Shown one piece after another: positions 15,995-64,000 of a stretch of DNA of 64,000 nt. This DNA is from Macrostomum lignano (lineage: Eukaryota), in contig NIVC01000879.1 in NCBI GenBank assembly GCA_002269645.1, positions 18,666 to 82,665 on the forward strand. Direction: 5' to 3'. Made by a program: the position numbers and the translations under genes. Positions within the stretch are counted from its first letter, which is position 1. Each line of letters starts with the position of its first letter. The notes under the pieces are model-generated. The model was not told where the DNA came from and ran no database searches. It was given only the letters and a program-made list of their open reading frames with translations.

Positions 15995-25500
<9,506 letters not shown>

Positions 25501-36923: not shown

Positions 36924-37110
<187 letters not shown>

Positions 37111-37271
37111 CTTTGAATTTTTTTAAATAGCTTTTTTTGCACTTTTCGTTGTTAATACTCGTAAATAGTTAAAACCCTGACGAAGGCCGCCTAGCCTAGG
37201 CCGAAATATCGATTCCAAGAAACCTAGTCGAACTGTGTGCGTGAATTTTTCCTTTGTTTTCATATCTATCA

Positions 37272-37570
<299 letters not shown>

Positions 37571-38424: not shown

Positions 38425-41400
38425 ATGATCTCTAACCAGCGTTTGACTCTGCCGTCAGCTTCTGCTGGCTTCGGTCTTCTGCTTCTGGCGCTGCTGGTGC
38501 TGCAGCAGCTCGGCTCCGCCAGCTCCACTGCCGCCGACGTTAAGCTCAAGGAGACTCCCATGTGAGTTGCCATGCTCAGGAGTGTGAGGATAGAAGACGA
38601 AGATAGAACATGAAGATAGAACATGGCGATAGAACACGAAGGTAGAACATGAAGATAGAACGTGAAGAAAGAACGTGAAGAAGATAGAACGTGAAGAAAG
38701 AACGTGAAGAAGATAGAACATGAAGATAGAACGCGAAGATAGAACATGGCGATAGAACACGAAGGTAGAACATGAAGATAGAACGTGAAGAAATAACGTG
38801 AAGAAGATAGAACGTGAAGAAATAACGTGAAGAAGATAGAACATGAAGATAGAACGTGAAGATAGAACGTGAAGATAGAACGTGAAGATAGAACATGAAG
38901 ATAGAACACGAAGATAGAACACGAAGATAGAACATGGCGATAGAACATGAAGATAGAACACGAAGATAGAACACGAATATAGAACACGAAGATAGAAAAC
39001 GAAGATAGAACACGAAGATAGAACATGAAGATAGATCATGAAGATAGAATGCAAAGATAGAGTATCTCGGACCCGCACACCGGGACATCAGGTTGAAAAT
39101 CAGAACGCGTGTCAAAGATTGACATGACAGCGAAGATCTTATCGCGCCTTCTTCCTCCCTCGCTTCCAGCACGGGCCGCTCTGGCTGGTGCATTGTCACT
39201 CTGCAGCGCCGCGAGGAGAAGAACTCGTCCTGCGGCAACATGGTGGAGATGACCATGGAGGGCCTGACCATCGACAAGTCCTCGGTGCCCATCCTGACCG
39301 ACGCCGCGCTGGCCAACCGGACGACACACGAGAAACGGCAGCTATCATTGCAGACCTACATTCGCGACTTCGCTTATAGCAAGGCCACGCCGAACTGCAC
39401 GTTCTATAAGTGAGCGAAAATTTTTCTACTGGCTACTGGTAGTAGAGGAATTAGAGAGGACAGTTTAAACTGAAGCTCAAGTAGAGACAGGAGTTCCAAT
39501 TTGCACTTTACGATTTGAACAACCAAAAAAACTGGCTGAAATCTACGGGTCTACATGCCAATGGTCTTTTAGTTAACAACTGTGTCTAACATGTTCACAC
39601 CCTGTCTAACAGTTTACACGCCTGTCTAATAACAGTACACACCCCTGTCTAACAGTTTACACGCCTGTCTTACAGCTCACACCCCTGTCTAATAGTTCAC
39701 AACCGTGTCTAACATGTTTACACCCCTGTCTAACAGTTTACACCCCTGTCTAACATGTTCACACCCTGTCTAACAGTTTACACTCCTGTCTAGCAGCTCA
39801 AAACCCTGTCTAACATTTTCAAACCCCTGTCTAACAGTTCACACCCTTTCTAACAGTTTACACGCCTGTCTAACAGTTCACACCCTGTCTAATAGTTCAC
39901 AATCGTGTCTAACAGTTCACACCCCTATCTAACATGTTCACACCCCTGTCTAACATGTTCACAGCCCTGTCTAACATGTTTACAGCCCTGTCTAACAGTT
40001 TACACTCCTTAATAGTTCAAACCCCTGTCTAACAGTTTACACCCCTGTCTAACAGCTCACACGCCTGTCCACGATCCTGTTCAACAGTGAACCACAGTCT
40101 AGCCCAGCAAAGCCCTCTTCACACCCCTTCTCACCACCACCCAGGCTGACCAACATCGAGAAGACGCAGTGCTGCGTTGGCTACGATGGCAGCAACTGCC
40201 AGACGGTTGTCTGCTTCGTCGATCGCGGCGGCTGCCTAAACGGCGGCAAGTGCGTCAAGCCCAACGTTTGCCAGTGCGCCACCAACTACCTGGGCACAAA
40301 CTGCGATGAGGACCTCAACGGTGAGTACTGTTAGAACTCTCATGGGCGGGAACATGCAAGCAAACTTTGCTGTTGGATTAACAGTATCTCAACTCTGGAC
40401 TTCCGGATGGCAAATGAAGCAATTTTGTCAATTTCGCCAGAACTTTGCTGGCTGGCTGGACACCGGTAGCATTTCTGATAATTATGAAAAATTTTGAGTG
40501 CATCTCGGACTCAGTTTTATGTACACTTGCTTCATTTGCAATTCGGAAGTCCAGAAGCTGAGATATTGTGAATAAGGTACTAAAAATATCTACAAGTAGT
40601 ACATTTTCAGCGAAAATCATGGATACCATTACAACTAGCTCGTAGATGGGCCACTCAGCACATTTGCGGATAGGCTACTTTAAGTAGAAAGATAAATCTA
40701 TAAGCATTTTAATGTCTTTTAGAACAAGACTCGCCTATTTGGCCCTCTCCTCACCCGCTCTGGCCGCGTCTTTCCGCACAAAATCTCTACCCCATCGCCC
40801 CCCAATTTTTATTGCCTCCCTCGGCCTTCCCGCCCAAAGCTGCCTGCCTGCCATGTACATTATATACGCTCGTTTATTGGCCCTCTCACCCCTTTACAGC
40901 TGAACCCCTCCGGCCGCGTCTTTCCGCACAAAATCTCTACCCCCGGCCCGCCCCCCCCCCCTGATTTTTCTTGCCATTCTCGATGTCCAGCTTAAAATTT
41001 CGCCTGTCATGTACATTCTTAGTTACGCTGGCTAATGTACATTACTGCTGCACCATTAGCCAGTTGTTTACGTCTGCAAGCTTGGCTTATAAATTTATCG
41101 AGTCATTTTAACAGTCTTTTTATTAAATAAATAGCTTCTGTATTCTTCCTTGCTACAAGTGAAACTTCTTTATTAAGCATATGTAGTGGCTCATCTAGCT
41201 ATTCTAGTACATGTATCTGCAGAGTATTCTCGTATTCTGTGAGTAATGGAAAGCCTGAAAGCCTGAACGATTTCAAACTCACATTTACATGTAGTGCAAA
41301 TGTTGTAATGATACTCTCAATTCAGTAGTACGTAAAGAGTAGCCGAGTAGCTAAAGTAACTAAAGTATGAAAATCCAGGGATTACGTGTAATAAAAACTG

Positions 41401-44400
41401 CTTGTTTCCCCAACTGCTTGCAGCCATCAAGAACAACCCGAACGAGCAGTATTGCTACTCAGACGACGCCTGTCTGACCAAGAAGACCGGCTTCGGCTCG
41501 AGTCGGGTTGCGTTCGGGCGCTGCTGCTCCGACGGCACCGGCAGCTTTGGCTACCAGAAGGGCTGCATGAGCTGCAAGACCAGCACTGTTGGTAAGATGT
41601 CTCATCGACTCTGTCCGACGACTCTGTCCCATCCGACTCAGTCTCACCTGTTGACGACTCTGTCTCACCAGTTAATGACTCTGTCTCACCTGTTGACGAC
41701 TCTGTCTCACCTGTTGATGACTCTGTCTCACCTGTTGATGACTCTGTCTCACCTGTTGATGACTCTGTCTCACCTGTTGACGACTCTGTCTCACCTGTTG
41801 ATGACTCTGTCTCACCTGTTGATGACTCTGTCTCACCTGTTGATGACTCTGTCTCACCTGTTGATGACTCTGACTCACATGTTGATGACTCTGACTCACA
41901 TGTTGATGACTCTGTCTCACATGTTGATGACTCTGACTCACATGTTGATGACTCTGACTCACATGTTGATGACTCTGTCTCACATGTTGATGACTCTGAC
42001 TCACATGTTGACGACTCTGTCTCACCTGTTGATGACTCTGTCTCACCTGTTGATGACTCTGTCTCACCTGTTGACGGGGCTCTTACTTTCTGGCTTTCAG
42101 CTCTTTGAACACAGCAGTCGTTACCCCTATCTAACCAAGAATGTGTGCATTCAATCCACTTAGCAAGTTCTTCTTTTTAAATAATATGACCATAAATTCA
42201 TCACCGCTCGACAGCCAAGAACAATACGGGAGTCGAGGTCGTGCCATTCGACACCTGCGTGAGCTACGGCCCGAACTCCTATCGAACGTTCGACGGTCTC
42301 ACCTTCGAGTATCAGGGCCGGTGCACCTACCTGCTGGCTGGCAGTACGAACCCAACTATGAAGTGGTGGTGCACCATCACACTGCTTAACTGTGACAAGT
42401 TTGAGACCTGCAGGAAGGTAAAGCTTAGCTTGGAGACGATTTTGTACATTTTGGGTCACACTGGAGATAGACTGTGGGTCACTCAAATAAGATAAGGGAA
42501 ATTGATCAGATTCATAACTGCAAAATTGAATAACACAAGGCTATTAAACTCAAATCTCAATTGCAACACAATTTCAGCAAATAACGATGCGTTTCGACGA
42601 CATCAACCAGTACGTGGCTCTAGGCTACAATGTCCAGGTCTTCAAGCTGTCCGGCACCACAGGAGCCACCACTCTCACTGCCAACGTCACCCTGGAGGAG
42701 AATTCGGAGCCGAACGAGTGGAACGGAGTGAAAGTCGAACGCAAAGGTGTCAATGTTTACCTGACCGTTCGCAGCATCGGCGTCAAGCTTAAGTGGGACA
42801 ACGAGAACTCCGTCTTCGTCACGGTGGACCGCTCGCTTCACAAGAACCGAGGCCTGAAGGGCCTCTGCGGCGACTACGATGGCGACGCGACTAACGACTT
42901 TGGCAGCGCGCCAAATCCTGCGGCATTCGGCAACCAGTGGAAATCGGAGTCGGTGAGTGACGAGCTCGGATGGATCTTGTGTGGTGACTGAGTCTGTGTA
43001 CCTGCGTCCGTTTTCCGGTACACCCTGTGTGAATTGGCATGACTTGCTCGGTTCCGCAATCGCTAGAAATCAGCATGGCTCACCGGTCCTTTCCCATCTT
43101 GCGCAGTGCCAAGACATCGCCAATGTGCCAATCCACTGCGAGAGCCCCGAGGACCAGGCGGCCGCGGAGGGCGACTGCCGGCCAATCAACAACGTGTTCT
43201 TCCAGTGCCATAGCAAGATCAGCCCCACCCAGGTGGTCAAGAGGTGCGTGCAGGACATGTGCATCCTGAAGAAGAAAGGCGAGACCAGCGACTCAGCCAA
43301 GTCATCGGTGCTGTGCTCCCACCTGAGCGCCTACTCGTACCAGTGCTCGCTGGAGGGTATCTGCATCGACTGGCGCGGCAGCACCATGTGCCGTGAGTAG
43401 AACTGACAACTCACCTGGCAACGACTGACCCGTCGCAGCCAATAGGCCATTAGAGGCACTCGCGTGCTTGTAGATTTTATAATTCAAAACGGACCAGAGG
43501 GTTTTAGTATTTGAAAATTCGTTTTTTTCTAAAAAATTAAAATCCAATTCAAAACGGCGCCAAAATATGTGTTTTGAAGCAATTATTAAATTAATTAAAA
43601 TAGCTATGGCAAGTGCTCATGAAACATCTTTTAAAACCCAGATATTTAAAATGTTAATACTTTTGAAGGTGAATTTTAGTTAGACAATTCTTCAACTAAA
43701 TTTGATTGGCGCCAAATAGAATTTGATTTCAGTTAATGAAGAAAAACAAGGGAAGCCCAAAGTTCAACTCAATTTTTCGAACAAATCCAGAAGTACAGCA
43801 ATTATCTCTACTGCTTTATTTACACAGAACCTCATTCTAAGTTCTTAGGAACTACTTCTGAGACGACTTCTTTAATTTACGCATCAAACCCGGAAAAATC
43901 CGTTTTGCAGCTCAGAGCTGCCCGGCCCTGATGACCTGGAGCGAGTGCGCCAGCGCCTGCCCGACCACCTGCGCCAATTACGATCAGCTGAAATCTGCCA
44001 CCTGCGAGAGCAGCATGGTGCCCAGGTGCAAATGCGGCTCCGGCTACGTCCATTACAAAAGTACATGCATCCGGCCGAACGAGTGCCCGTGCACTTATAA
44101 CTCGGTAGAGTACATGCCAGGCAGCAACCTGGTGGTTGACTGCAGCACCTGGTAAGTGCGATGCTGCTTGCTCTCTGGCTCTAAGCTAGAACTTTTTATC
44201 TGTATTCTAGTAGGTGCTAGTCCCACCTTTAACAGGTATTAGCTCTAATCTAACCGGTATAAGCTCCAGTTTAAGCGGTATAAGCTCCAGTCTAAGCGGT
44301 ATAAGCTCCAGTTTAAGTGGTATAAGCTCTAATCTAACCGGTATAAGCTCCAGTTTAAGCGGTATAAGCCCCAATCTAACCGGTATAAGCTCCAGTCTAA

Positions 44401-47400
44401 CCGGTATAAGCCCCAATCTAACCGGTATAAGCTCCAGTCTAACTGGTATAAGCTCCAGTCTAAGTGGTATAAGCTCCTGTCTAACCGGTACAAGCCCCAA
44501 TCTAACCGGTATAAGCTCCAGTCTAACCGGTATAAGCTCCAGTCTAAGTGGTATAAGCTCCAGTCTAACCGGTAAAAGCTCCTGTCTAACCGGTAAAAGC
44601 TCGCATTTACTCGCTATACAAGTTCAGCCCTGATCACTCATCCTTTCCCCTTTCAGCAACTGCGCCAATGGACGCTGGCAGTGCACCTACAACCCGAACT
44701 GCCCGAAGATGTGCTCAATCACTGGCAGCCACATCGTCACCTTCGATGGCGCCAAGATGGACTTCAACCCGATGGGCTGCGCGTACACCCTGCTGGAGCC
44801 GGTGTCTGGCGCCAATGACTCGCGTCTGCAAGTCCAGGTAACCATGGAGCCGAGCCCGGAGTACCTGCTGGCAGTCACCGCCGACTCCCAGTTCGTCAAT
44901 CTGCCCAAGATGATCACCGTCAAGTACCGCGGCGTCACCATCCAGCTGAAGTCGGTGACGCTGGCGGCCGGCACCCGACCATCCGTGATCATCGATGGAG
45001 TCGACTTCACGAATTCGCTGCCGTACGAGAATGTGCGCAGCCAGATCCTGGTGCGCCAGCTCACCTCCTTCTACGCCATGGTGAAGATCGGCAACCACCT
45101 CAGCGTGTACTTCGACGGCTACAGAACTGTCGAACTAAAGGGCGCCAAATTGCTGAGTCAGAAGGTGCGTTTTGGTTGATGTTCGCCTATCCAAAACTAT
45201 TCTAAAATGTGTGTTAATCCGCGTCTCAAATGTGTGTGAATCCATTCTTGACATGTTTGTGAATCCATGTCTAACATGTGTGAATCCATGTCTAACATGT
45301 GTGTGAATCCATTCTTGACATGTTTGTGAATCCATGTCTAACATGTGTGAATCCATGTCTAACATGTGTGTGAATCCATGTCTAGCATGTGTGTGAATCC
45401 ATGTCTAATATGTGTTTATCCATGTCTAACATGTGTGTGAATCCATGTTAAATGTGTGTGAATCCATGTCTAACATGTGTTTATCCATGTCTAAAATGTG
45501 TGAACCCATGTTTAATGTGTGTGAATCCATGTTTAATGTGTGTGAATCCATGTTAAATGTGTGTGAATCCATATTTAATGTGTGTGAATCCATGTTTAAT
45601 GTGTGTGAATCCATGTTAAATGTGTGTGAATCCATATTTAATGTGTGTGAATCCATGTTTAAAGTGTGTGAATCCATATTTAATGTGTGTGAATCCATTT
45701 TTAATGTGTGTGAATCTATATTTAAAGTGTGTGAATCCATATTTAATGTGAGTGAATCCATGTTTAATGTGTGTGAATCCATTTTTAATGTGTGTGAATC
45801 TATATTTAAAGTGTGTGAATCCATATTTAATGTGTGTGAATCCATGTTTAATGTGTGTGAATCCATATTTAATGTGTGTGAATCCATGTTTAATGTGTGT
45901 GAATCCATCTTTAATGTGTGTGAATCCATGTTAAATGTGTGTGAATCTTGTCCTAAGGTGCGAATTCAATTGCAATTCAGCTATGAACACTTGCCTAAAA
46001 TGTGTGAATCCACAGACAACAGCTGTGAATGTGTGCCTTATAGCCATTAATCCTGGCCTACATTTTTGAATTGTCCTTCGCTATTAACGCTCGTATAAAT
46101 CCAGTCCTCACGCTAGCGAGTCAATTACCAACTTTCAGATCGAAGGCCTATGCGGAAACTTTGATAGCAAAACGGAAAACGACCTGCACACCAAGGGCTC
46201 CGATATGATTGCGCCCCCCGTGCAGGTGGCGCAGTCCTACGTGTCCGGCTCCTGCAGCAAGACCGCCGCGGAGCTGCCCAGCCCCGGCTCGACTTCTCAG
46301 TCTGTAAGTCAGAGTCCACTCCCTCTCCTGACTGATTCTGAGAGTCCACTCCCTCTCCTGACTGATTCTGAGAGTCCACCCCCTCTCCTGACTAATTTTG
46401 AGAGTCCGCCCCCTCTCCTGACTGAGTTTAAGTCAGTCAGTGGAGCACTGATCATGCCCGATGTCATAAATAAAACCTGTGCCCATGGAATATCACTTGC
46501 ACAGTGAACGAGTCACAGTGAACGAGTCACAGTGAACGAGTCACAGTGAACGAGTCACAGTGAACGAGTCACAGTGAACGAGTCACAGTGAACGAGTCAC
46601 AGTGAACGAGTCACAGTGAACGAGTCACAGTGAACGAGTCACAGTGAACGAGTCACAGTGAACGAGTCACAGTGAACGAGTCACAGTGAACGAGTCACAG
46701 TGAACGAGTCACAGTGAACGAGTCACAGTGAACGAGTCACAGTGAACGAGTCACAGTGAACGAGTCACAGTGAACGAGTCACAGTGAACGAGTCACAGTG
46801 AACGAGTCACAGTGAACGAGTCACAGTGAACGAGTCACAGTGAACGAGTCACAGTGAACGAGTCACAGTGAACGAGTCACACTGAAGTGAACGTAGTTTT
46901 AATTTACACAAAAGTTTGCATGCAATGCCCAAAATAGTCAGACAGGTACATTCTGATTAAAATAATTATTTTGTGCTAACTAATGGTCATCTCTTCTCCA
47001 CTTTCCCCATAATTGTAATTTCAGTCTCAGGTGAGCTGCACCATTTTACCTGCGCCATGCTTGCAGTATCTTGGCGTTTTAATTATAGAGCTTTAGCAAG
47101 CAATGCCTGAACATGCGCCATTGCACCTCCCTCCGCTACTTAACACAGACACCGGATATTGTAAATTTTCAACTAAAAACTAATAATTTGAATAGTTTAG
47201 TGGATTAGGCACACGGTACTGTGGCCGCGTTAGCAACTGCACGCAAAGCAATTATAGATTTCAATTTGCACCATGACCTTACCTGTTACACCACTGCACC
47301 CTTTGTTAGACCGCGCCAATTTGATAGCTATTAACCCGTTATAAAAATCCTGTTTTCTATGAGTAATTAATTTTGTTACAACTCAAACAAAATCGAATAT

Positions 47401-50400
47401 TTATTTTATTTGGATAACGAAATAGAACAAGCTAATTTTGAATAGTAAAACAAATCAAAATGATTATAAATAAGTAGTCAGATAGGAGTAGCATTTTAAT
47501 TTAAGATTCATTTTGTAAGCAAATACGATTGCAAGTTTACAAAAAATTTCTGAATGTAAGATATTTGCGAATTTCTGCGATCCTAAATTTTCTACGGTTT
47601 TACTAAATTCAGTTCAAATTCGCGCCAAATATGAATTGTTAAACGAACATATTAATCACATATAAACAAGTTAGAACAATTTCTGACTTTTAAACTTTTA
47701 ACCTTTTAAGCAGCCTATGAGAACTTTAAATCTACTTTCCAAAACTCAAACCATGCAGCTTAGGGTGTTTAAAAGTGGCTTTGATTGAGTTTAGAGGTTG
47801 TTAAACGATGCCCCAGTTGGCGCGAATTTGAATTGACTTTCATTTAACGCTGAAAATGCAGTATATCGACAAAAATTATTCCGTTGAATTTTTGATATTG
47901 TAAAAACTTAATGGGAACAGAAACCTTGAAGGAAATCCAAATAGTCTTGTTGTGATTCAATATTAGTTTGCTTCCTAAAGACGCAGATATAAGTTGCTAT
48001 GTTTACTAATAATTAACACATGATAAGAGCTTTAAATATTAATAAAATGGTTAAAACGACAAGTATGAATTCCGAAGTTTTGCGCATCAAATTGAATTCA
48101 GTTTTAGCGAGTGAAGTTAATAATATCAATAAATTTTTTAATTCAAGCAGCATAATTAAAGCAGAATATGACAAGCACCCCCAAGTCACCTGTTTGTGCA
48201 GCTGAATGAGCTGCGATCTCGGCAATGCAATTTCCGGGATTAAATTTAATGGCCTGAAAGTCCTAATTCAACGCCATACACAAACCTCACCCTTCACCCA
48301 GTTCGTTGCACCTGATCACCTGCGCAAACCGGGTCCTAGCTAATATCTATTTTAGAGCATAAGAGATATTCCAGCTGCAAAAATTCTATTGCATAAAACA
48401 ATTAACATTCTCAGCTCAGCGGAGTGGACGATTGTACTCAAGTATTGCTCAACAGCGACTCGTTCAAAGCCTGCCGCGACTCCAAGAAGGTGGACATACT
48501 GGGCTATTACTACAGATTCTGCCAGAAGGAGAAGGCATGCGGCGGCATTCCCAACATCGGCGAGCTCTACTGCACCGCGGCAATGAGCGCCGCCCGCGCC
48601 TGCAAAACTGCCGGCTTCCAGATCGACTTCTCAACTGATAGCAGATTGTCCAAGTGCGGTGAGTCTCGTTTACTGATAGCTACCAATGTCAGCTGTGGGG
48701 TCGCATGAATACTGAAGACTGTGCTGTCTAGGATTAAAGAAGTACCGATCCTCAACAATCCCGTACCTGTTCTCAACAATCCCGTACCTGTTCTCAACAA
48801 TCCCGTACCTGTTCTTAATAATCTAGTACCTGTTCTCAACAATCCCGTACCTGTTCTTAATAATCCCGTACCTGTTCTCAACAATCCCGTACCTGTTCTC
48901 AACAATCCCGTACCTGTTCTTAATAATCCCGTACCTGTTCTCAACAATCCCGTACCTGTTCTTAATAATCTAGTACCTGTTCTCAACAATCCCGTACCTG
49001 TTCTTAATAATCCCGTACCTGTTCTCAACAATCCCGTACCGATCCTCAAACAATCCCGCACCGATCCTCAACAATCCCGTACCGATCCTCAACAATCCCG
49101 TACCGATCCTCAACAATCCCGTACCGATCCTCAAACAATCCCTTACCGATCCTCAACAATCCCGTACCGATCCTCAACAATCCCGTACCGATCCTCAACA
49201 ATCCCGTACCGATCCTCAACAATCCCGTACCGATCCTCAACAATCCCGTACCGATCCTCAACAATCCCGTACCGATCCTCAACAATCCCGTACCGATCCA
49301 CAATCCAGTACCGATCCTCAACAATCCAGTGCCGATCCTCAAACAATCGCGTACCTGTCCTCAACAATTTTCAGCTCCATCCTGCATGTCTGGCGGCGGC
49401 TCGTTCACCATCTGTGCCCGGACCTGCCGATCCTCGTGCAGCGACTTGAGCAGCACCAGCATCTGCGAGCTGGGCTGTTTCCCTGGCTGCGACTGCCAGT
49501 ACGACAATCAGTATCGGGACGCCTACGGCACTTGCGTTCGCCAGTCTGAGTGCACCTGTCTAGACAGGTACAACCGGAACGGCAAAATCTATCGATCTGG
49601 CGCCGTCATCAGCCGTCAGTGCACAAATTGCACCTGCGCTAACGGTGATTTTGCTTGCGGCAACAGCTCCTGCGCCGATAAGGTGGTCTGCCCTAAGGAC
49701 CAAGTGTACTTGGACACCATGCCGGCCTGTCAGAAGTGCATCAACTATGACAAGTGCCAGTCGAACCAGTCGGAATCGGGCCGGTGCGGCTGTCCCGGGG
49801 ATCTTGTGAAGAAGGCGGACGTAAGTGAACACTGTAGACTTGCGAGCAGCTTTCATTGAATTCAACCAGCAGTCCGATCCTATAAAGTCATCTTATAGTT
49901 TAGTAGAAAGTTAAATAATGTAATGTAATAATTTTAGGATAAGACTCGTTTGTTGGCCCTCCCATCACCCAGGCTCCGACCGCGTCTTTCCGCACAAAAT
50001 GTCTACCCCCCCCCCCCAGGCCCGCCGCCCAGTGTTTATTGCCTTCCTCGGCTGGCTAATATACATTACGGCTGGGCCAATAGCGAGAAACTTTAAGCGT
50101 GTTAGCCATCTTATCATATCGTAAATTCAATTCATTATTTACATCCAAGTTGAGGGGCGAATTGAAAGGAGGCTATTTATAGCACAGTGTACATTCAAGC
50201 CACGTACATTAAAGAAAAGGGGTGAACTTGATTCAGATTCAAAAGAGGTCTATTTTTAGCTCTAAGTACATTTAAATTGCTACAGCCGCGCACGCCTCAG
50301 CTGAGGGTACAAAGCATAGATAAAGTATACATAGATTCCACCCCTGCCCAGAATGTACACACGCTCGTGTCCAAACTTTGACCACCATAAAACTCACCGT

Positions 50401-53400: not shown

Positions 53401-56400
53401 GCAACACGCGCAACTGTACGAGCTACTCTTGAATTGCTATTAGACGAAACAGTTAGCACCTGACAGCTTCTCAGCCCATAGAGACCTGAAAAGTGTGTTG
53501 CCAGTGGAACAATGTCCTTGCGATTATAAAACTTCTGCGCATGCACATTATTTAATTAGTAATCTCTATACCTTTCTGGTTATCCTGAGAATATTTGAAG
53601 CCACAAGTGAGAAATTGATAAAGTTAATCAGCATTTAGCGTTACATCCTCTTTCTACCAGGGGTAATTTATTGCAGTTATTACAATTTTCATATTACTGT
53701 AACCCTATTGCTGCAGCCATCATGTGCACTGGCGGTCGCGTCTACCAGCCCTGCATGCCACCCTGCGCCAAGACCTGCCACAATGTCGGCCTGGAGCCGG
53801 AGCCCCACTGCGTCAACAGCCAGTGCATCGAGGGCTGCGCCTGCCCCAACGGCTATGTTGAGCACGACAATGAGTGCATACCCAGTGACAACTGTCCCTG
53901 CTTCTACCAGGGCAAGGAGTACCCAAAGGTTCTGTCATTCACAATACCACTAGCTGTTCAACCTGCAGCTGCACCAAAGGCGGTGTGATGAACTGCACTA
54001 GCGACAGCTCAGTGTGCCGGCCGACTAAGCCAACTTGCACTGAGAACCAATACGCGTGCAATGTGACCGGGATGTGCATCAGCTACAGCCAGTTCTGCGA
54101 CGGCACTCTGGACTGTCTGTACGGAGACGACGAGAAGAACTGCAGTAAGTAGCATGCGATTGTGTATAGCTAGCTCATTGCGAGCTGGTCTTCAACCTGG
54201 CCCATGCAGTAACTCGGATCTGGGAGGCTGGCCCAGCAACTGAGGACCTGGTAGGCCGGCGGTGACCCAGAAACTGAGGATCTGGAAGGGTAGCGAGAGT
54301 CATGTGAGTCATGAGGGTCTGGGAGGGCGGCGGTGGCCTGACGTTGACTCCGGGAGGGTGACCCAGTAACTGAGAATCTGGAAGGCTGGCAGCCCAACCT
54401 AAGGATCTGATAGTGTGGCGGGGCGAAAAACAAGCCAGAGCACCCGAACTCAACCCGCAGACACAACCTGCTCGCCGTCGTACTTCCGCTGCATCACAAC
54501 GCAGCAGTGCGTGGCCATGTCTCTCAAATGCGACGGCATTCCTCAGTGCACGGACGGTTCGGACGAGTTAAACTGCGGTGAGACCAGACGAACTGAAGAA
54601 TCCACCATTTGCATATTGATTTTAAAGTTTTATTACAATAATGAACCGAGAATATATTTTACGCATACTTAGGACTCGAATGCTAAACCGCATCTCATTG
54701 CAGGTTGCAATCCAACTGAGATTCAATGCAACAAAACCGGCAAATGCCTGCCAAAGCAGAAACGATGCGACGGAGTCTACGACTGTGGACTGCCCGACAC
54801 GACTGACGAAGGCGACTGCAAGAGTGAGAAATATTTTATGGAAATTGTTTAAAATTTGAAAAACTTTTATAAAAGTCGCTAATCGACTTCATTCATAAAA
54901 CTGCTTATTTTCCACCTGGCAGAGTGCGACGAAGTGTCTGAGTTCAAATGTGGGGCAGCAGACACCACAGAAACCAAGTGCATTCCACGAGTCAACCACT
55001 GCGATGGCCACGACGACTGTGGAGACGGCAGCGACGAAATTGGCTGCAGTAAGCTCAGAAAGTCAAAATCGCAAAAACTAGCGACTTTTTAATTTAAACT
55101 TGGAAACTAATCAATCTTACATTTAGAATGCCTCTGCATGGAAAAGGACACTGTTATATGCGATCAGTGCAAGTGCATCAATGTGACACAACTCTGCGAC
55201 GGAAATCGCGATTGCGAAGTGAGTAAAAAATTTTAAATTTTGTTTTAGCTGAACCTGCTCAAATATTAATAAATAAAATTGAATTAATCATATAAAAAAA
55301 CTTTTCCGCCAAACGAAATGAAGGACGGAACCGATGAACAGTCTTGCACAACAACATCTACGACAACTACAACAACTACGCCGACATCTACAACAACGTC
55401 AACATCAACATCAACATCGACAACGACAACAACACCTACAACAACGACGACTTCGACGTCGACGACCACAACTCCATCGTCTACAACAACTACGACACCA
55501 TCATCAACAACGACAACCTCAAGCTCAACAACGACCACAGCACCAACGACGACAACCTCGACGTCGACCACCACGACATCGCCGTCGACGACTACTACGC
55601 CGCCTTCGACAACCACGACTACAGAGAACATTCTTGCAAAGAGCACCTCCTTGCCGCAGCGTTGCATTGAGGAAGACGGCATGGCGAACAATGGTCCAAT
55701 TGGGTTGAGCGACATCTCTGTGAGTGCTTCCACTCAAGGTGTTGGACTCATTGCGCAAAGCGAGTTGAACCTCCTTCGTCCGTCGACGAGTGGTCTTGAT
55801 GTCAACCGCGCACCTTCAGTAACCCGCAAAGATGAAAGCATTTCCTTTGACTTCAATGTCAGTGGCGACGACGGCAGTCAGTCGATTATTGGAAAGCTCA
55901 GCATCATTTCAAGCACTCCAGGATTGATTACGTCAATCCAGCTGTATAAATCGTCTGGCGTTGCTGCAACCTTCACATTAGTAAAATCTGCCAACAGTGC
56001 TGAGGACGTGGCCACGTGTAGCAATAACTTTATCGAGTGTGCCTCAATCGGCGGCCTTGGTCTACAGACAAACAGAATCAGAATCAAGTTCAACTTCATC
56101 AATACGAACAACCTTCCGGTCAATGTTCAGGTAAGCATGCTAGGATGTTACACAAGACTTTCGACCACAACATCAACGTCGACGTCGACGTCGACGTCTA
56201 CGACAACATCCACATCAACCACAACTACGCCGCCGTCGACCACAACCACTACGCCAACATCGACGACGACAGCCTCAACGTCGACTACAACAACGCCGCC
56301 GTCGACCACAACTACTAAGCCGACGTCTACCACTATCACATCGTCAACAACAACAACATCGCCAACTACAACGTCTTTTTCGACATCGACAACGACAACA

Positions 56401-59400
56401 ACGACACCAACAACGACTTCTGCAACGACAGTCACCACACCGTGCACCGGGGACAACGTTCGCTGTCTAAATGCCGCTGGTGTCAGCATTTGTGCCCACG
56501 TATGCGATGGCATCGTTGAGTGCAGGAACGGAGAAGATGAACCTCCGTCGTGCTTGTGTAAGCTGGCAAATCATATTGTGACAGCCTCTGTCTTGTAGTA
56601 GCGGGTATGCCTTGTATCTTCTTCGTAGCCTTAGATATTCTCTTTGTCGATGATCGTACGGTCGTAGAAGCATACCAATAGCTAGCATCGAATATAGTGG
56701 AATTCGATATGCCCGTACGTTGTCTTTAGTTTCTGCTCAATGCATCACACTGACGAATTTCAATCATATAGGCAATCTTAAGCTGTGTCTCGTACGAGCT
56801 TATTTCTTGGCATATAGACGATTTACTCGTACTGAGTATGTAGACAAACCCTCCATTAAGTGACTTCATTTTTGCATTTGCTGTAAAAAGTTGAGAACTT
56901 ATCCGAAAACTATTTAAACAAATTTCAAACAGCTGTCAGTCAAAGCAGCCTTCTAAAAGTTTTCCCTCTGACCTAAATAGGTTATTCAAGCTTTAGTAAA
57001 AATAGAACAACAGAATTGCCTTTAACCTTTGCGCATTGCAGCCACAACAACAACGACTACGTCGACAACTACCGGCATCGTGCGAGTTTGCGAGCCAGAT
57101 GAACAGGATGGAATGGCGACGGACTCGGTGATCAGAGACGAGGACATCAAAGTGAATCCCAGTTCGTCAGCCAAGAAGCCGAAGTCTGACCTGCGGCCAG
57201 TCTCACCAGACTACTTTGTTCTTAACACAACGGGACTGAACGCGACATTAACAATCTCGCTGACACAAAACACTAAAATCAACTCTCAGTTGACTCGGCT
57301 TGAGCTAATATCGACGGACTTTTTCATTCCAACTGCATTTATAGTCGTTGAATTTAAAAAAGCTGAGGATTCGGACTACACACAATTGGCTAACTTGACG
57401 AGCACTAGCAGAAAATGCTTCCCGGATCTGCTGCACTGCGCTTTGCCAGCCAATTCAAATCCGTTGACGGCGCAAGAAGTTCGGCTGACGTTTTCATTCG
57501 TGCAGGAAACAACCATGTCCTTAAAGCTCTCGGTCTTTGGTTGCTTTGAAAAACTAACAACAACTCTGCCGCCAACCACAATGTACACCACAACTGAACT
57601 TGTAAAGCAAAGACGGAGACCACGCCTCCTCGTTGCGTAGAAAAAGATGGTATGGCAGATTCGAACATAATCACCACGGAAGAAATGTACATTAGAAGCG
57701 CATCTCTCGGAGTGAATTCGTATGCCGACCGCAGTTTAGATGATCTAAGGTTCAGCAAAGCAGGAACTGGATTCCAAATCACAGGCAATACAAATACACC
57801 AACGACAGAGTCCATTCAGCTGGATTTCTTCGTTGCAGGTGACGACGGAAGTGCCTCGATAATAGGTGCACTGCAAATTGCCCAGGTTGGACCCAAGTCA
57901 CTGATAAAAAAGGTGGAGCTCAGAGCCAATTACAACAATTCATCACCCGAAGATTTGATTGTAAGCGCCACTGAAACATCAGGCATAACAGCTTGCTTTA
58001 ATGACATGATCCAATGCGCGAAAATACCTGGCCAAGGACTAACGGCAACGAAAATATCCATTACGATTTCCTTTGTTAATATAATGCCTCAGCACATAAA
58101 ACTACAAATACTCGGGTGCTATCAAACTATCGAAACGTCGACAACAACCACGACGTCGACTACGACAACGCCGCCGTCGACCACAACTACTACACCAACG
58201 TCGACAGCAACCACAACGCCTTCTACGACCACGACACCGCCGTCGACGACAACTACGACACCATCAACTACGACCACTACACCAACAACCACGACAACGT
58301 CGACGTCGACTAGTACTACAACGCCTTCCACTACTACAGTGCCGCGTGTTTGTATTGAAATTGATGGACTTTCGAACCCATTCATCATCTCACCATCGAA
58401 TATTCAAGTAATCGGTGGAACACAGTCTGGATACACGGCTTCTGATTTAGAAAAGTTGCGCCTGTCATCACCAGTCCCATTTAATTTGAACCGGCCAACG
58501 GCCACATCTTTTAGTAATCCAAATGAGAACATTCTAATTGAAGTGAACCCTGCAGCTGAATCGACCAGCGGAGTAGAGATTGGACGAATTGAGCTGAGGT
58601 TTACAGCCCCCGAAGTAACAGCCGTTCGAGTGTACAACAAGCCGACGCTTTCTCAACCAAATTGGGACACTTACTATTTCTCTGGCAGCAATCTCACGAA
58701 CTGCAAGTCAGACCTAATGGTGTGCCTTAGTACAGTCTCTATTGTGTCGAAAATGCTTCGATTCGAGGTCTTCTACACATCTGTAACTGACAAAAACAGC
58801 ATCGACCTCCAAATTGGAATATATGGATGTTTCAAGCAAGGCTCCACAACTTCACCGGCGACAACGACCACGCCCACATCGACGACTACCACTCCAACGT
58901 CAACAACCACAACAACGCCTTCAACAACTACCACCACTCCGTCGTCAACAACAACCACAACGGCTTCAACAACTACAACACCAACTTCGACGACAGCTAC
59001 TACAACACCAACTTCGACGACCACAACCTCGACGTCGACTACGACAACGCCGCCGTCGACCACAACCACTACACCAACGTCGACAACAACCACAACGCCT
59101 TCAACAACAACTACAACACCAACATCGACGACGACAACTACAACACCTCCGTCTACAACTACGACCTCAACATCGACAACCACAACGCCAACGTCGACTA
59201 CAACTACGCCAACGTCGACTACGACTACGCCAACGTCGACAACTACAACGCCTACATCGACGACAACAACACCTACAACAACAACGACCTCGACGTCGAC
59301 GACCACAACTCCACCGTCTACAACAACTACGACACCATCATCAACAACGACAACCTCAAGCTCAACAACGACCACAGCACCAACGACGACAACCTCGACG

Positions 59401-62400
59401 TCGACCACCACGACATCGCCGTCGACGACTACTACGCCGCCTTCGACAACCACGACTACAGAGAACATTCTTGCAAAGAGCACCTCCTTGCCGCAGCGTT
59501 GCATTGAGGAAGACGGCATGGCGAACAATGGTCCAATTGGGTTGAGCGACATCTCTGTGAGTGCTTCCACTCAAGGTGTTGGACTCATTGCGCAAAGCGA
59601 GTTGAACCTCCTTCGTCCGTCGACGAGTGGTCTTGATGTCAACCGCGCACCTTCAGTAACCCGCAAAGATGAAAGCATTTCCTTTGACTTCAATGTCAGT
59701 GGCGACGACGGCAGTCAGTCGATTATTGGAAAGCTCAGCATCATTTCAAGCACTCCAGGATTGATTACGTCAATCCAGCTGTATAAATCGTCTGGCGTTG
59801 CTGCAACCTTCACATTAGTAAAATCTGCCAACAGTGCTGAGGACGTGGCCACGTGTAGCAATAACTTTATCGAGTGTGCCTCAATCGGCGGCCTTGGTCT
59901 ACAGACAAACAGAATCAGAATCAAGTTCAACTTCATCAATACGAACAACCTTCCGGTCAATGTTCAGGTAAGCATGCTAGGATGTTACACAAGACTTTCG
60001 ACCACAACATCAACGTCGACGTCGACGTCGACGTCTACGACAACATCCACATCAACCACAACTACGCCGCCGTCGACCACAACCACTACGCCAACGTCGA
60101 CAACAACCACAACGCCTTCAACAACAACTACAACACCAACATCGACGACGACAACTACAACACCTCCTTCGACGACGACAACTACAACACCGACTTCGAC
60201 GACGACAACTACAACACCGACTTCGACGACGACTACTACAACACCTACTTCGACGACGACAACTACAACACCTACTTCGACGATGACAACTACAACGCCG
60301 ACTTCGACGACGACTACTACTACACCTACTTCGACGACCACAACCTCGACGTCGACTACGACAACGCCGCCGTCGACCACAACTACTACACCAACGTCGA
60401 CAGCAACCACAACGCCTTCTACGACCACGACACCGCCGTCGACGACAACTACGACACCATCAACTACGACCACTACACCAACAACCACGACAACGTCGAC
60501 GTCGACTAGTACTACAACGCCTTCCACTACTACAGTGCCGCGTGTTTGTATTGAAATTGATGGACTTTCGAACCCATTCATCATCTCACCATCGAATATT
60601 CAAGTAATCGGTGGAACACAGTCTGGATACACGGCTTCTGATTTAGAAAAGTTGCGCCTGTCATCACCAGTCCCATTTAATTTGAACCGGCCAACGGCCA
60701 CATCTTTTAGTAATCCAAATGAGAACATTCTAATTGAAGTGAACCCTGCAGCTGAATCGACCAGCGGAGTAGAGATTGGACGAATTGAGCTGAGGTTTAC
60801 AGCCCCCGAAGTAACAGCCGTTCGAGTGTACAACAAGCCGACGCTTTCTCAACCAAATTGGGACACTTACTATTTCTCTGGCAGCAATCTCACGAACTGC
60901 AAGTCAGACCTAATGGTGTGCCTTAGTACAGTCTCTATTGTGTCGAAAATGCTTCGATTCGAGGTCTTCTACACATCTGTAACTGACAAAAACAGCATCG
61001 ACCTCCAAATTGGAATATATGGATGTTTCAAGCAAGGCTCCACAACTTCACCGGCGACAACGACCACGCCCACATCGACGACTACCACTCCAACGTCAAC
61101 AACCACAACAACGCCTTCAACAACTACCACCACTCCGTCGTCAACAACAACCACAACGGCTTCAACAACTACAACACCAACTTCGACGACAGCTACTACA
61201 ACACCAACTTCGACGACCACAACCTCGACGTCGACTACGACAACGCCGCCGTCGACCACAACCACTACACCAACGTCGACAACAACCACAACGCCTTCAA
61301 CAACAACTACAACACCAACATCGACGACGACAACTACAACACCTCCGTCTACAACTACGACCTCAACATCGACAACCACAACGCCAACGTCGACTACAAC
61401 TACGCCTACGTCGACTACGACTACGCCAACGTCGACAACTACAACGCCTACATCGACGACAACAACACCTACAACAACAACGACCTCGACGTCGACGACC
61501 ACAACTCCACCGTCTACAACAACTACGACACCATCATCAACAACGACAACCTCAAGCTCAACAACGACAACCTCAAGCTCAACAACGACCACAGCACCAA
61601 CGACGACAACCTCGACGTCGACCACCACGACATCGCCGTCGACGACTACTACGCCGCCTTCGACAACCACGACTACAGAGAACATTCTTGCAAAGAGCAC
61701 CTCCTTGCCGCAGCGTTGCATTGAGGAAGACGGCATGGCGAACAATGGTCCAATTGGGTTGAGCGACATCTCTGTGAGTGCTTCCACTCAAGGTGTTGGA
61801 CTCATTGCGCAAAGCGAGTTGAACCTCCTTCGTCCGTCGACGAGTGGTCTTGATGTCAACCGCGCACCTTCAGTAACCCGCAAAGATGAAAGCATTTCCT
61901 TTGACTTCAATGTCAGTGGCGACGACGGCAGTCAGTCGATTATTGGAAAGCTCAGCATCATTTCAAGCACTCCAGGATTGATTACGTCAATCCAGCTGTA
62001 TAAATCGTCTGGCGTTGCTGCAACCTTCACATTAGTAAAATCTGCCAACAGTGCTGAGGACGTGGCCACGTGTAGCAATAACTTTATCGAGTGTGCCTCA
62101 ATCGGCGGCCTTGGTCTACAGACAAACAGAATCAGAATCAAGTTCAACTTCATCAATACGAACAACCTTCCGGTCAATGTTCAGGTAAGCATGCTAGGAT
62201 GTTACACAAGACTTTCGACCACAACATCAACGTCGACGTCGACGTCGACGTCTACGACAACATCCACATCAACCACAACTACGCCGCCGTCGACCACAAC
62301 CACTACGCCAACGTCGACAACAACCACAACGCCTTCAACAACAACTACAACACCAACATCGACGACGACAACTACAACACCTCCTTCGACGACGACAACT

Positions 62401-64000
62401 ACAACACCGACTTCGACGACGACAACTACAACACCGACTTCGACGACGACTACTACAACACCTACTTCGACGACGACAACTACAACACCTACTTCGACGA
62501 TGACAACTACAACGCCGACTTCGACGACGACTACTACTACACCTACTTCGACGACCACAACCTCGACGTCGACTACGACAACGCCGCCGTCGACCACAAC
62601 TACTACACCAACGTCGACAGCAACCACAACGCCTTCTACGACCACGACACCGCCGTCGACGACAACTACGACACCATCAACTACGACCACTACACCAACA
62701 ACCACGACAACGTCGACGTCGACTAGTACTACAACGCCTTCCACTACTACAGTGCCGCGTGTTTGTATTGAAATTGATGGACTTTCGAACCCATTCATCA
62801 TCTCACCATCGAATATTCAAGTAATCGGTGGAACACAGTCTGGATACACGGCTTCTGATTTAGAAAAGTTGCGCCTGTCATCACCAGTCCCATTTAATTT
62901 GAACCGGCCAACGGCCACATCTTTTAGTAATCCAAATGAGAACATTCTAATTGAAGTGAACCCTGCAGCTGAATCGACCAGCGGAGTAGAGATTGGACGA
63001 ATTGAGCTGAGGTTTACAGCCCCCGAAGTAACAGCCGTTCGAGTGTACAACAAGCCGACGCTTTCTCAACCAAATTGGGACACTTACTATTTCTCTGGCA
63101 GCAATCTCACGAACTGCAAGTCAGACCTAATGGTGTGCCTTAGTACAGTCTCTATTGTGTCGAAAATGCTTCGATTCGAGGTCTTCTACACATCTGTAAC
63201 TGACAAAAACAGCATCGACCTCCAAATTGGAATATATGGATGTTTCAAGCAAGGCTCCACAACTTCACCGGCGACAACGACCACGCCCACATCGACGACT
63301 ACCACTCCAACGTCAACAACCACAACAACGCCTTCAACAACTACCACCACTCCGTCGTCAACAACAACCACAACGGCTTCAACAACTACAACACCAACTT
63401 CGACGACAGCTACTACAACACCAACTTCGACGACCACAACCTCGACGTCGACTACGACAACGCCGCCGTCGACCACAACCACTACACCAACGTCGACAAC
63501 AACCACAACGCCTTCAACAACAACTACAACACCAACATCGACGACGACAACTACAACACCTCCGTCTACAACTACGACCTCAACATCGACAACCACAACG
63601 CCAACGTCGACTACAACTACGCCTACGTCGACTACGACTACGCCAACGTCGACAACTACAACGCCTACATCGACGACAACAACACCTACAACAACAACGA
63701 CCTCGACGTCGACGACCACAACTCCACCGTCTACAACAACTACGACACCATCATCAACAACGACAACCTCAAGCTCAACAACGACCACAGCACCAACGAC
63801 GACAACCTCGACGTCGACCACCACGACATCGCCGTCGACGACTACTACGCCGCCTTCGACAACCACGACTACAGAGAACATTCTTGCAAAGAGCACCTCC
63901 TTGCCGCAGCGTTGCATTGAGGAAGACGGCATGGCGAACAATGGTCCAATTGGGTTGAGCGACATCTCTGTGAGTGCTTCCACTCAAGGTGTTGGACTCA
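38425..64000 (+). CDS. Giant secreted SCO-spondin/hemolectin-like mucin (signal peptide, EMI/EGF-like, 3x VWD-C8-TIL, 6x LDLa, discoidin-like domains alternating with Thr-rich linkers); 3' end beyond the window; two -1 frame breaks
   Basis: Phase-consistent exons: 38425-38561 (signal peptide [32 protein letters not shown]), 39170-39409, 40145-40320, 41424-41591, 42215-42417, 42578-42952, 43107-43392, 43911-44151, 44657-45164, 46139-46303, 48415-48658, 49375-49820, 50879-51026, 51132-51408, 51798-52339, 53717-54144, 54461-54577, 54704-54823, 54923-55048, 55127-55218, 55324-56557, 57042 to >64000. VWD motifs YRTFDG, IVTFDG and GDPHYSTFD, each with a GLCG motif; LDLa motifs such as CDG..DC.DGSDE. 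From 57607 the frame shows no stop in the stretches I translated, and the repeat units stay in frame to the window end. Confidence 0.9.
38590..39050. repeat. 13-bp minisatellite (GAAGATAGAACGT)n in mucin intron 1
   Basis: Direct reading. Confidence 0.93.
39590..40070. repeat. ~20-bp degenerate minisatellite in mucin intron 2
   Basis: (CACCCCTGTCTAACAGTTTA)n variants. Confidence 0.9.
40680..41160 (+). repeat. Dispersed repeat family copy 1 (intron 3)
   Basis: Shares AGTAGAAAG...AAGACTCG...TTTCCGCACAAAATCTCTACCCC...GTTTACGTCTGCAAG with the copy at ~52555-53300; the 5' part is also shared with ~49900-50060. Confidence 0.75.
41605..42075. repeat. 21-bp minisatellite in mucin intron 4
   Basis: (GACTCTGTCTCACCTGTTGAT)n. 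Confidence 0.95.
44228..44605. repeat. 21-bp minisatellite in a mucin intron
   Basis: (GGTATAAGCTCCAGTCTAACC)n. Confidence 0.93.
45225..45945. repeat. ~21-bp minisatellite in a mucin intron
   Basis: (GAATCCATGTTTAATGTGTGT)n. Confidence 0.93.
46501..46884. repeat. Perfect 14-bp minisatellite (ACAGTGAACGAGTC)n
   Basis: Direct reading; I saw no variant until the last unit. Confidence 0.98.
48742..49365. repeat. 21-bp minisatellite with two sequence subtypes, ending at the splice acceptor
   Basis: (CCCGTACCTGTTCTCAACAAT)n followed by (CCCGTACCGATCCTCAACAAT)n. Confidence 0.94.
49900..50060 (+). repeat. Dispersed repeat family copy 2 (truncated)
   Basis: AGTAGAAAG...GATAAGACTCG...GCGTCTTTCCGCACAAAATG. 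Confidence 0.65.
51425..51660. repeat. 30-bp minisatellite in a mucin intron
   Basis: (CTATCTACCAGATTGCTGTAACAGCTGGTT)n. Confidence 0.9.
52555..53300 (+). repeat. Dispersed repeat family copy 3, with an internal ~118-bp unit amplified ~4.5 times
   Basis: CGCACAAAATCTC recurs at 52661, 52778, 52896 and onward; its termini match copy 1. Confidence 0.85.
58140..64000 (+). repeat. Coding tandem array with a ~2.2-kb unit (Thr-rich, domain B, Thr-rich, domain A) inside the last visible mucin exon
   Basis: Domain B starts at 58345, 60541 and 62758; domain A starts at 59461, 61678 and 63874. Periods are 2196 and 2217 nt, both multiples of 3. Copies are near-identical. Confidence 0.96.

Follow-up and report, generated by a model that had tools for sequence, protein, structure and literature searches.

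A probable giant VWD-headed mucin-type glycoprotein in Macrostomum lignano footprints, a paralogue in design of the glue protein Mlig-ap2

Reversible underwater adhesion has its main genetic model in Macrostomum lignano, and the repeats of its surface-binding adhesion protein 2 (Mlig-ap2; GenBank MH586845; sequence printed in the supplementary information of PMC6410801) match no known domain that could explain its grip on substrates. The 64,000-nucleotide stretch of the M. lignano assembly Mlig_3_7 analyzed here (the window) contains one + strand gene, running from 38425 to past 64000, in which exons encoding VWD domains are followed by exons encoding Thr-rich linkers and repeated globular units. 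The question raised by this locus is whether these parts make up one translated protein and, if so, how that protein relates to Mlig-ap2 and to other secreted polymers. The locus probably represents one gene for a giant, acidic, secreted mucin-type glycoprotein of Mlig-ap2-like design, for which a mechanism based on multimers, stalks, and beads is proposed below.

Exons were modeled with a simple donor/acceptor scoring script and checked by hand. The resulting model contains 22 exons and 21 introns, all GT-AG with strong consensus (mostly GTGAGT or GTAAGT donors and YAG acceptors), and its translation comprises 4411 residues without a stop; the model is 3' incomplete, so the gene has at least 4411 codons. 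Stop-free segments in shifting frames begin at 38425 and are followed by a single frame that stays open from 57598 to the window end (2134 codons). Exon 1 (38425-38561, + strand, as for all features of the gene below) carries the start codon and a signal-peptide-like N-terminus, the hydrophobic core of which was read by eye. The NCBI protein BOX15_Mlig011629g1 (a "hypothetical protein" of 1475 aa) starts here and matches the splice model at 100% over residues 1 to 1456, after which it runs into an out-of-frame stop. An automated model of the same locus from another assembly (P0001) is 97 to 100% identical across exons. Exon 55324-56557, in which the frame is open throughout, encodes the end of the fifth LDLa module, a Pro/Thr/Ser linker, the first globular unit (A0), a further Pro/Thr/Ser linker, and a degenerate sixth LDLa module, and it physically joins the LDLa modules to unit A0 and the mucin linkers. 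The giant last exon in the window begins with the segment 57042-57607 (acceptor ATTGCAG/CC), which includes unit C.

Evidence of translation came from mass spectrometry (MS) of adhesive-footprint material (Dataset S2 of Wunderer et al. 2019, PMC6410801). One entry in that dataset, a 7877-nt transcript with both untranslated regions and a 2625-aa product (282 kDa; isoelectric point [pI], 5.7) automatically annotated as MUC5B/hemolectin-like (MUC5B-like, e-118), was represented by 16 and 19 peptides in two experiments (25 distinct). All 25 distinct peptides mapped exactly to the gene model, between residues 41 and 2429, and none mapped to the locus of a paralogue described below. The peptide LKETPITGR spans the junction of exons 1 and 2, another peptide crosses the LDLa4/5 junction, and one begins exactly at exon 10. 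Four peptides in this entry were from unit A, one was from unit C (LSVFGCFEK), and two were from unit D. Two exact unit B peptides were found in the footprint data under RNA1509_11446 (=RNA815_290.1; 738 aa, no Pfam domain). Because a single transcript entry carries peptides of both the VWD and the Thr-rich parts, these parts belong to one translated gene. The initial annotation of this DNA, made from its letters alone, had proposed a VWD-headed protein running into a Thr-rich bead array, and the link between the VWD and Thr-rich exons held, both in the exon shared by LDLa5, A0, and linkers and in the shared transcript entry. The protein is expressed from one message, its translation extends to units A, B, C, and D, and it is deposited with footprints.

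The reading frame of the gene is interrupted twice in the window. Break 1 (53926-53929) lies in a G-run in which the window is one G short, and it is the cause of the truncation of BOX15_Mlig011629g1. P0001 reads straight through this position, giving the sequence that the module behind TIL3 should have, judged by its counterpart behind TIL1, and LDLa peptides encoded 3' of the break occur in the same MS entry as upstream peptides. Break 2 (57602-57612) lies between units C and D at an A-run (~57604-57607), where frame 1 runs to a stop at 57638 and frame 0 is open from beyond 57595; the two unit D peptides are found in the same transcript entry as the unit A, unit C, and VWD peptides. Both breaks are read through, since peptides from both sides occur in one transcript entry. 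Introns were considered as the cause of the breaks at 53928 and ~57607 and were rejected, as the two frames overlap on the same DNA and leave no room for an intron. The paralogue (BOX15_Mlig009912g1, 1493 aa; locus L001) is likewise truncated, by a break in a C-run, and has further 1-nt homopolymer frame breaks in its locus (~20590, 26094-26160, and 28064-28130). Both breaks in the window are concluded to have no biological meaning and to stem from homopolymer errors of the assembly or from indels that differ between individuals. They had been overlooked in the initial annotation, as had the tandem repeat at 58136 to 64000 and the sharing of the A0 exon with LDLa5 and LDLa6.

The head of the predicted protein contains, as initially annotated, a signal-peptide-like start, three VWD-C8-TIL assemblies, and six LDLa modules (Pfam; VWD, 35 to 60 bits; C8, 58/22/58 bits; TIL, 36/28/40 bits). 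Exons 2 to 4 (39170-39409, 40145-40320, and 41424-41591) encode a Cys-rich N-terminal region with a CCxGYxGxNC motif, one weak EGF-like module, and two peptides detected by MS. An EMI/EGF-like region had been proposed here; no Pfam match to EMI was obtained at E ≤ 0.1 in the spliced N-terminus, where only the CCxGYxGxNC motif was present, and the EGF-like signal was retained solely at scores below Pfam cutoffs (EGF_2, 17 to 19 bits; EGF_TEN, 21 to 22 bits). VWD1-C8-TIL1 (42215-44151; exons 42215-42417, 42578-42952, 43107-43392, and 43911-44151) scored 35 and 38 bits for VWD, 57.9 bits for C8, and 36.4 bits for TIL. VWD2-C8-TIL2, together with a D'-like segment, is encoded by exons 44657-45164, 46139-46303, 48415-48658, 49375-49820, and 50879-51026 (VWD, 37.7 bits; C8, 21.9 bits, just below the cutoff; TIL, 28.5 bits). 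The Cys-rich D'-like segment, to which Pfam is blind, lies between TIL2 and VWD3, in the position of D' in von Willebrand factor and mucins. VWD3-C8-TIL3 (exons 51132-51408, 51798-52339, and 53717-53928) scored 59.8 and 38.8 bits for VWD, 58.5 bits for C8, and 40.2 bits for TIL. A GDPH motif opens VWD3 (model residue 1119, window ~51150), as it does in the paralogue, and is lacking from VWD1 and VWD2. Segments 53928-54144, 54461-54577, 54704-54823, 54923-55048, and 55127-55218 encode an E-module after TIL3, LDLa1 to LDLa4, and the first half of LDLa5. LDLa1 to LDLa4 were clear (Pfam Ldl_recept_a; 34.2, 47.3, 31.3, and 33.0 bits), LDLa5, split over exons 55127-55218 and 55324 onward, reached 26.4 bits once spliced, and LDLa6 was degenerate (19.7 bits versus a cutoff of 24.1).

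Globular units of ~160 aa follow the LDLa modules in the order A0 (55660-56151), C (57083-57547), D (57631-58122), B1 (58345-58833), A1 (59497-59988), B2 (60541-61029), A2 (61714-62205), B3 (62758-63246), and partial A3 (from 63907). The initial annotation had located units A, C, D, and B to within 6 nt, and its motifs for their opening [C-x-E-x-DG(M/L)] and closing [(L/F/Y)GC] hold. Units A, C, D, and B contain four Cys each and share 23 to 36% mutual identity (36% between D and A), with C2, E4, D6, G7, C120, C127, G162, and C163 invariant; from this alignment, they are read as genuine paralogues of one another. The linkers, which had been described as near-pure T/S/P, range from 15 to 228 aa and total 1354 aa, of which 93% are Thr, Ser, or Pro and 64% are Thr. 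A macro-repeat of 2.2 kb, B-linker-A-linker, extends from 58136 to 63999 and runs off the window; its copies are 98.75 to 99.7% identical, with a period of ~2196 to 2217 bp (self-BLAST). The A copies are 100% identical in DNA, A0 in the other exon included, as are the B copies, and the flanking linkers vary in length. The DNA-identical units suggest very recent amplification, gene conversion limited to the units, or assembly smoothing. Given the open frame of 2134 codons and a match of the paralogue's units to the window unit profile at 34.8 bits, the open reading array and its match to the paralogue are far beyond chance. The fragment RNA1509_11446 also carries TTTSAETLTCLEDLIACASISGR and ADFSAPLSLVK, both absent from the window and from L001; these peptides are probably derived from an additional type of unit, encoded farther 3' in the gene.

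The units matched no Pfam family at E ≤ 1, including PF00754 and Mucin2_WxxW/CysD (PF13330), and a PDB sequence-profile search with them returned noise only. When 1.84 billion representative proteins were searched exhaustively with HMMER, P0001, from the same locus, was the sole match. Word-indexed protein searches with unit alignments (A1, and A6, which includes the Mlig-ap2 and paralogue units) returned nothing and missed P0001 too, and the exhaustive search was therefore relied on. By sequence, the units are orphans. In comparison by hhalign with two genuine FA58C domains from a hemolectin-like protein (P0023), only the last 14 residues, which form the final strand ending in GC, were aligned (E = 0.016; probability, 2.8%). 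The earlier statement that the Cys-begun frame of the units is typical of FA58C was not supported, either by this short alignment or by a PF00754 match.

Structure prediction gave a different view of the same units. Unit A, modeled with AlphaFold2 from a four-sequence alignment, was predicted to be mostly beta (predicted local distance difference test [pLDDT], 76.9; predicted template-modeling score [pTM], 0.78), and unit B (23% identity to A), modeled in a separate run, was predicted to have the same strand order (pLDDT, 71.4; pTM, 0.74). Foldseek searches of the PDB ranked the CASPR2 discoidin domain, neuropilin-1 b1b2, a galactose-binding CBM32, and APC10 as matches for unit A, and neuropilin-1 b1b2, the DDR2 discoidin domain, CBM32, and a chitosan-binding module as matches for unit B. 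The top entries were 5y4m, 2qqi, and 7azb, with a probability of 1.00 for discoidin domains (E of ~1e-4; template-modeling score [TM], 0.54 to 0.55; root mean square deviation [rmsd], 5.5 to 5.9 Å; identity, 8 to 16%). The first and last Cys of the units (positions 2 and 163) are invariant, and discoidin domains also start and end with Cys. A galactose-binding-domain-like jelly roll, with discoidin domains nearest, is predicted for the units with moderate confidence. The units are thus discoidin-like in predicted fold and terminal Cys clamp and are not PF00754 members by any sequence test, so that the proposal of discoidin-like units survives for the modeled fold, in which A and B both have discoidin domains as top matches, and falls for the sequence.

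Among characterized proteins, the closest in design is Mlig-ap2. Its head is colinear with that of the present protein (27% identity over 1034 columns; BLASTP, E = 4e-88) through TIL1, VWD2, C8, TIL2, the D'-like segment, VWD3, C8, TIL3, and the first LDLa. In both proteins the head is followed by globular units that begin and end with Cys, each with a Thr-rich linker, in tandem amplification, and both proteins were found in footprints. The two nevertheless differ in several respects. Mlig-ap2 is encoded by a different sequence on scaf3366, with the present gene on another scaffold, and it has been described with 2 VWD, 2 TIL, and 1 LDLa domains, compared to 3, 3, and 6 here. Its units have two Cys, are K/R-rich, and are joined by K/R-containing linkers, whereas the units in the window have four Cys, are acidic, and are joined by almost pure T/S/P linkers. 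It carries 46 repeats of 255 or 221 aa, compared to a period of ~735 aa for A plus B here, and its tail consists of TSP1/TIL repeats and a knot-like end, similar to SCO-spondin, whereas the tail of the present gene lies beyond the window. The possibility that the gene is Mlig-ap2 itself was rejected, as the N-terminus, the units, and the scaffold all differ. In design, the gene is a paralogue and not an orthologue of that for Mlig-ap2. The initial annotation had not recognized the architecture as described; Mlig-ap2 has the colinear head, the units, and the Thr-rich linkers, and what remains of that claim is that the gene is a paralogue and not an orthologue.

A second gene of this type was found in the same assembly. 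BOX15_Mlig009912g1, at L001, is a paralogue with 50% identity and the same layout, and its peptides also occur in the footprint MS data. Its array (L001 21889-28348) contains one unique unit, P1, followed by at least eight near-identical two-Cys units, P2, with T/S/P/E/G linkers; its units are clearly related to those in the window by the profile match at 34.8 bits and, in having two Cys, resemble those of Mlig-ap2. The array is adjacent to an N gap, beyond which lies an oppositely oriented LDLa-encoding gene call, an arrangement that may reflect a scaffold mis-join. The Mlig-ap2 repeats comprise RP-1 (21 copies) and RP-2 (25 copies) and have been described as "repeats of unknown function" (PMC6410801). 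With hhalign, the window units alone did not match RP-1/RP-2 (E = 0.51), and the window and paralogue units together aligned with them end to end over 143 columns (E = 4.8e-4; probability, 32%), the C-terminal Cys residues falling opposite each other. The score of this alignment was 29.5, compared to 9.9 ± 1.6 (maximum, 17.3) for 300 column shuffles, or ~12 standard deviations, and 10.0 for the reversed alignment; column shuffling is a lenient control for such scores, since it destroys beta-strand periodicity. A common origin of the window units and the Mlig-ap2 RP units is, from these profile comparisons, probable but unproven. A broader proposal, offered tentatively and considered less likely than its negation, is that the window units, the Mlig009912 units, and RP-1/RP-2 form one Macrostomum-restricted, Cys-clamped, discoidin/CBM32-like binding family, derived from the single FA5/8C of a SCO-spondin-like ancestor and amplified with mucin spacers. 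If this were true, flatworm glue and mucus would have arisen from a Reissner-fibre-type protein turned into a multivalent lectin-on-stalk polymer, with the beads gripping the substrate.

Similarities to several other secreted proteins were also found. Like SCO-spondin, the present protein has three VWD domains with C8 and TIL, followed by a cluster of LDLa modules. SCO-spondin contains one FA5/8C, presumably located among its LDLa repeats, an arrangement for which a database hit (P0016), a low-quality model without the domain, gave no confirmation, and the window holds at least eight divergent units with mucin spacers instead. SCO-spondin also has an EMI domain, and none was detected here; its TSR, SCOR(TIL), and vWC repeats and CTCK are absent from the window, the 3' end of which precedes the gene end. 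In chick SCO-spondin, 1 EMI, 3 VWD, 1 FA5/8C, 13 LDLrA, and 27 TSR domains and a CTCK have been described (PMC8487547). The SCO-spondin layout suggested in the initial annotation is therefore retained for the three VWD domains and the LDLa cluster that follows them and is not retained for EMI or, by sequence, for FA58C. A SCO-spondin-like pedal-mucus protein of a limpet, P-vulgata_3, consists of a head only, with 3 VWD, 2 C8, 2 TIL, and 5 LDLa domains (PMC7333891). The head is 29% identical to an SSPO-like Mya arenaria protein over 82% of its length, and its best database scores were to FCGBP-like and zonadhesin proteins; for this reason, orthology to SSPO is not established.

Gel-forming mucins (MUC2, MUC5AC, MUC5B, and MUC6) and von Willebrand factor share with the present protein a D1-D2-D'D3-like head, and in the gel-forming mucins, as here, long Pro/Thr/Ser domains are broken by small Cys-containing globular domains. 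The interruptions in those mucins are CysD domains, whereas the units here have no match to PF13330. Vertebrate gel-forming mucins lack LDLa modules, of which six are found here, and the C-terminus corresponding to the mucin D4-B-C-CK part lies beyond the window. Hemolectin/hemocytin and the sea-star protein Sfp1 combine VWD-C8-TIL with discoidin or galactose-binding lectin modules in secreted proteins that are sticky or clotting, and the hemolectin-like match P0023 has VWD and two genuine FA58C domains. The lectin modules in these proteins are recognizable as FA58C or Gal-lectin, are few, and lack mucin linkers, in contrast to the units here, which fail PF00754. The gene does not represent a new kind of system; it is an architectural variant among VWD-headed mucin/adhesive glycoproteins, closest to Mlig-ap2.

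The domain content is consistent with a mechanism in which each part of the protein would have a known counterpart. VWD-C8-TIL assemblies drive disulfide-linked multimerization in von Willebrand factor and gel-forming mucins, and the head may likewise form disulfide-linked multimers in the secretory pathway. A GDPH motif at the start of a VWD domain can mediate low-pH self-cleavage and cross-linking, as in MUC2, MUC5AC, and FCGBP; the one at the start of VWD3 may likewise permit self-cleavage and cross-linking triggered by acid. Thr/Ser/Pro runs are substrates of mucin-type O-glycosylation, and the Thr-rich linkers would be densely O-glycosylated and form stiff bottle-brush stalks. Galactose-binding-domain-like modules usually bind carbohydrates or surfaces, and the stalks would space many such putative discoidin/CBM32-type modules, allowing multivalent binding of glycans or surfaces. 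LDLa modules bind Ca2+ and dock basic side chains, so that through its acidic, Ca2+-binding LDLa cluster the protein could engage partners rich in Lys and Arg, Mlig-ap1 among them. Such a protein would form a hydrated, sticky polymer with many weak binding beads. PNA-reactive Gal-beta1,3-GalNAc has been reported in the frontal and adhesive glands of M. lignano (PMC6410801).

Alternative readings of the locus were weighed against the one-gene glycoprotein. Two genes or a decaying pseudogene would be present if the frame breaks were real, with the protein ending after TIL3 and the Thr-rich array being separate or untranslated. The NCBI model does end at break 1, and the window sequence contains both breaks; against this, peptides of LDLa4/5 and of units A, C, D, and B are encoded 3' of the breaks, and the first four of these groups share a transcript entry with VWD peptides. 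P0001, taken from the other assembly, has no interruption at break 1, each break falls within a homopolymer, similar breaks occur in the paralogue in the same assembly, and 2134 codons are open after break 2. This explanation is already contradicted by the peptide evidence and is regarded as highly improbable. A further explanation, that the B-plus-A array, or its copy number and the perfect identity of its units, is an assembly artifact, would account for the 100% DNA identity of the unit copies and would fit an assembly with indel errors and with an N gap beside the array at the paralogue locus, as well as the length of the short-read transcript, which encodes only 2625 aa. The linkers between copies, however, differ in both length and sequence, a pattern that no simple collapse or duplication error would yield, unit A0 is found in a different exon context in two assemblies, and long tandem series of near-identical units are likewise present in Mlig-ap2 and in the paralogue. 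An artifact of this kind is considered unlikely, though less so than a pseudogene.

The nature of the units and the role of the protein allow for alternatives of higher probability. The units may be a lineage-specific beta-sandwich unrelated to discoidin, with the Foldseek matches and the C...GC clamp reflecting generic jelly-roll geometry or convergence. The lack of a Pfam match at E ≤ 1, the noise from the PDB profile search, the 14-residue extent of the alignment to genuine FA58C domains, the TM, rmsd, and identity values given above, and the restriction of the HMMER match to the same locus all agree with this possibility. Units A and B, however, 23% identical and modeled apart, yielded models of one fold class for which discoidin domains were the highest-ranking matches (probability, 1.00), a Cys stands at either end of the units, a feature shared with discoidin domains, and the C-terminal strand motif outscored 300 of 300 shuffles. 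An unrelated sandwich is therefore a possible but disfavored explanation. It has also been considered that the protein is a dedicated third glue component of the tail adhesive gland cells, an Mlig-ap2-like surface binder and not a general mucus. Its presence in the footprint MS data in at least two experiments, its head colinear with that of Mlig-ap2, and the probable relationship of its units to the RP units would fit such a role. Two in situ screens and the 2019 study, however, identified only ap1 and ap2 as tail-specific adhesive transcripts, adhesion and footprints are both lost when ap2 alone is knocked down, footprint preparations include mucus and contaminating cellular material (Fig. 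S16 legend: adhering mucus), and the protein is acidic (pI 5.7), in contrast to the K/R-rich Mlig-ap2 repeats. A third glue component appears doubtful, somewhat more so than the unrelated sandwich. Because the adhesive-gland screens yielded only ap1 and ap2 and because knockdown of ap2 alone abolishes footprints, a substrate-coating component of gliding or trail mucus, perhaps accessory to the glue, is favored over a dedicated adhesive-gland glue and is itself judged about as likely as not. The mucus or adhesive candidate named in the initial annotation fits the presence of the protein in adhesive footprints. Identity with RNA1509_276, presented as a Macrostomum mucus protein by Pjeta et al. 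2019, was rejected, as that entry is a fibrillin-like protein of 6230 aa with different peptides.

Several observations weigh against the reading of the locus as an Mlig-ap2-like mucin-type glycoprotein with the mechanism proposed above. The footprint samples also hold tubulin and yolk or lipid-transfer proteins, and because of such contaminants, presence in footprints represents deposition, not adhesive function. The protein was absent among the listed entries of the PNA pull-down data set, and the published in situ hybridization, RNA interference, and lectin data are for Mlig-ap2. The VWD modules have a GLCG motif, not the CGLC motif of mucins and von Willebrand factor. The C-terminus, where a dimerizing cystine knot would be located, is beyond the window, and the 738-aa 3'-like fragment has no Pfam domain. 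Both frame breaks have to be ascribed to assembly error or interindividual indels, and the fold call relies on four-sequence alignments, moderate pLDDT, and a TM of ~0.55, without sequence-profile support.

What is new at this locus is the predicted lectin-like fold of the beads, the probable kinship of the units with the Mlig-ap2 repeats, the presence of at least two further ap2-like proteins in footprints, and the truncation of the public models. With this locus and its paralogue, Mlig-ap2 becomes part of a small protein family that combines a VWD/LDLa head with a mucin-like design, and at least two members besides Mlig-ap2 are left on the substrate. The structure predictions provide a hypothesis for the repeat units, namely, putative galactose-binding-domain-like beads on O-glycosylated stalks. 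The relevance of these results is mainly to bioadhesion and mucin evolution. In the public annotation the gene appears solely as a hypothetical protein cut short, and a supplementary table lists its product without comment; no mention of the identifiers Mlig011629 and RNA815_290 or of the transcript was found in the main text of the papers. The NCBI proteins of both genes each continue for thousands of residues past the annotated end, and proteomic or expression studies that use the truncated public models lose two-thirds or more of each protein.

Minisatellite and microsatellite arrays were very dense in the window, and nearly all long introns of the mucin-like gene contain one (41600-42105, 44214-44630, 45430-46047, 48709-49360, and 52588-53200). 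Others were located at 1-2757, 4600-5700, 12150-12760, 16509-17125, 18351-19000, 21794-22450, and 36850-37530. The remainder of the window contains further genes. A homeobox gene (6833-7657 and 9485-9928, + strand) has an exon rich in poly-Gln/poly-Ala and a homeodomain exon (Pfam Homeodomain, 77 bits). A gene for an EAG/ERG-type voltage-gated K+ channel (~15998-25383, - strand) includes PAS, Ion_trans, pore Ion_trans_2, and cNMP-binding-like exons, and a Tc1/mariner-type transposase helix-turn-helix remnant (HTH_29 and HTH_SB; 21359-21715, - strand) lies inside it. A DHHC palmitoyltransferase gene (29361-31878, + strand; Pfam DHHC, 68 bits) has a later exon region that overlaps a long minisatellite.

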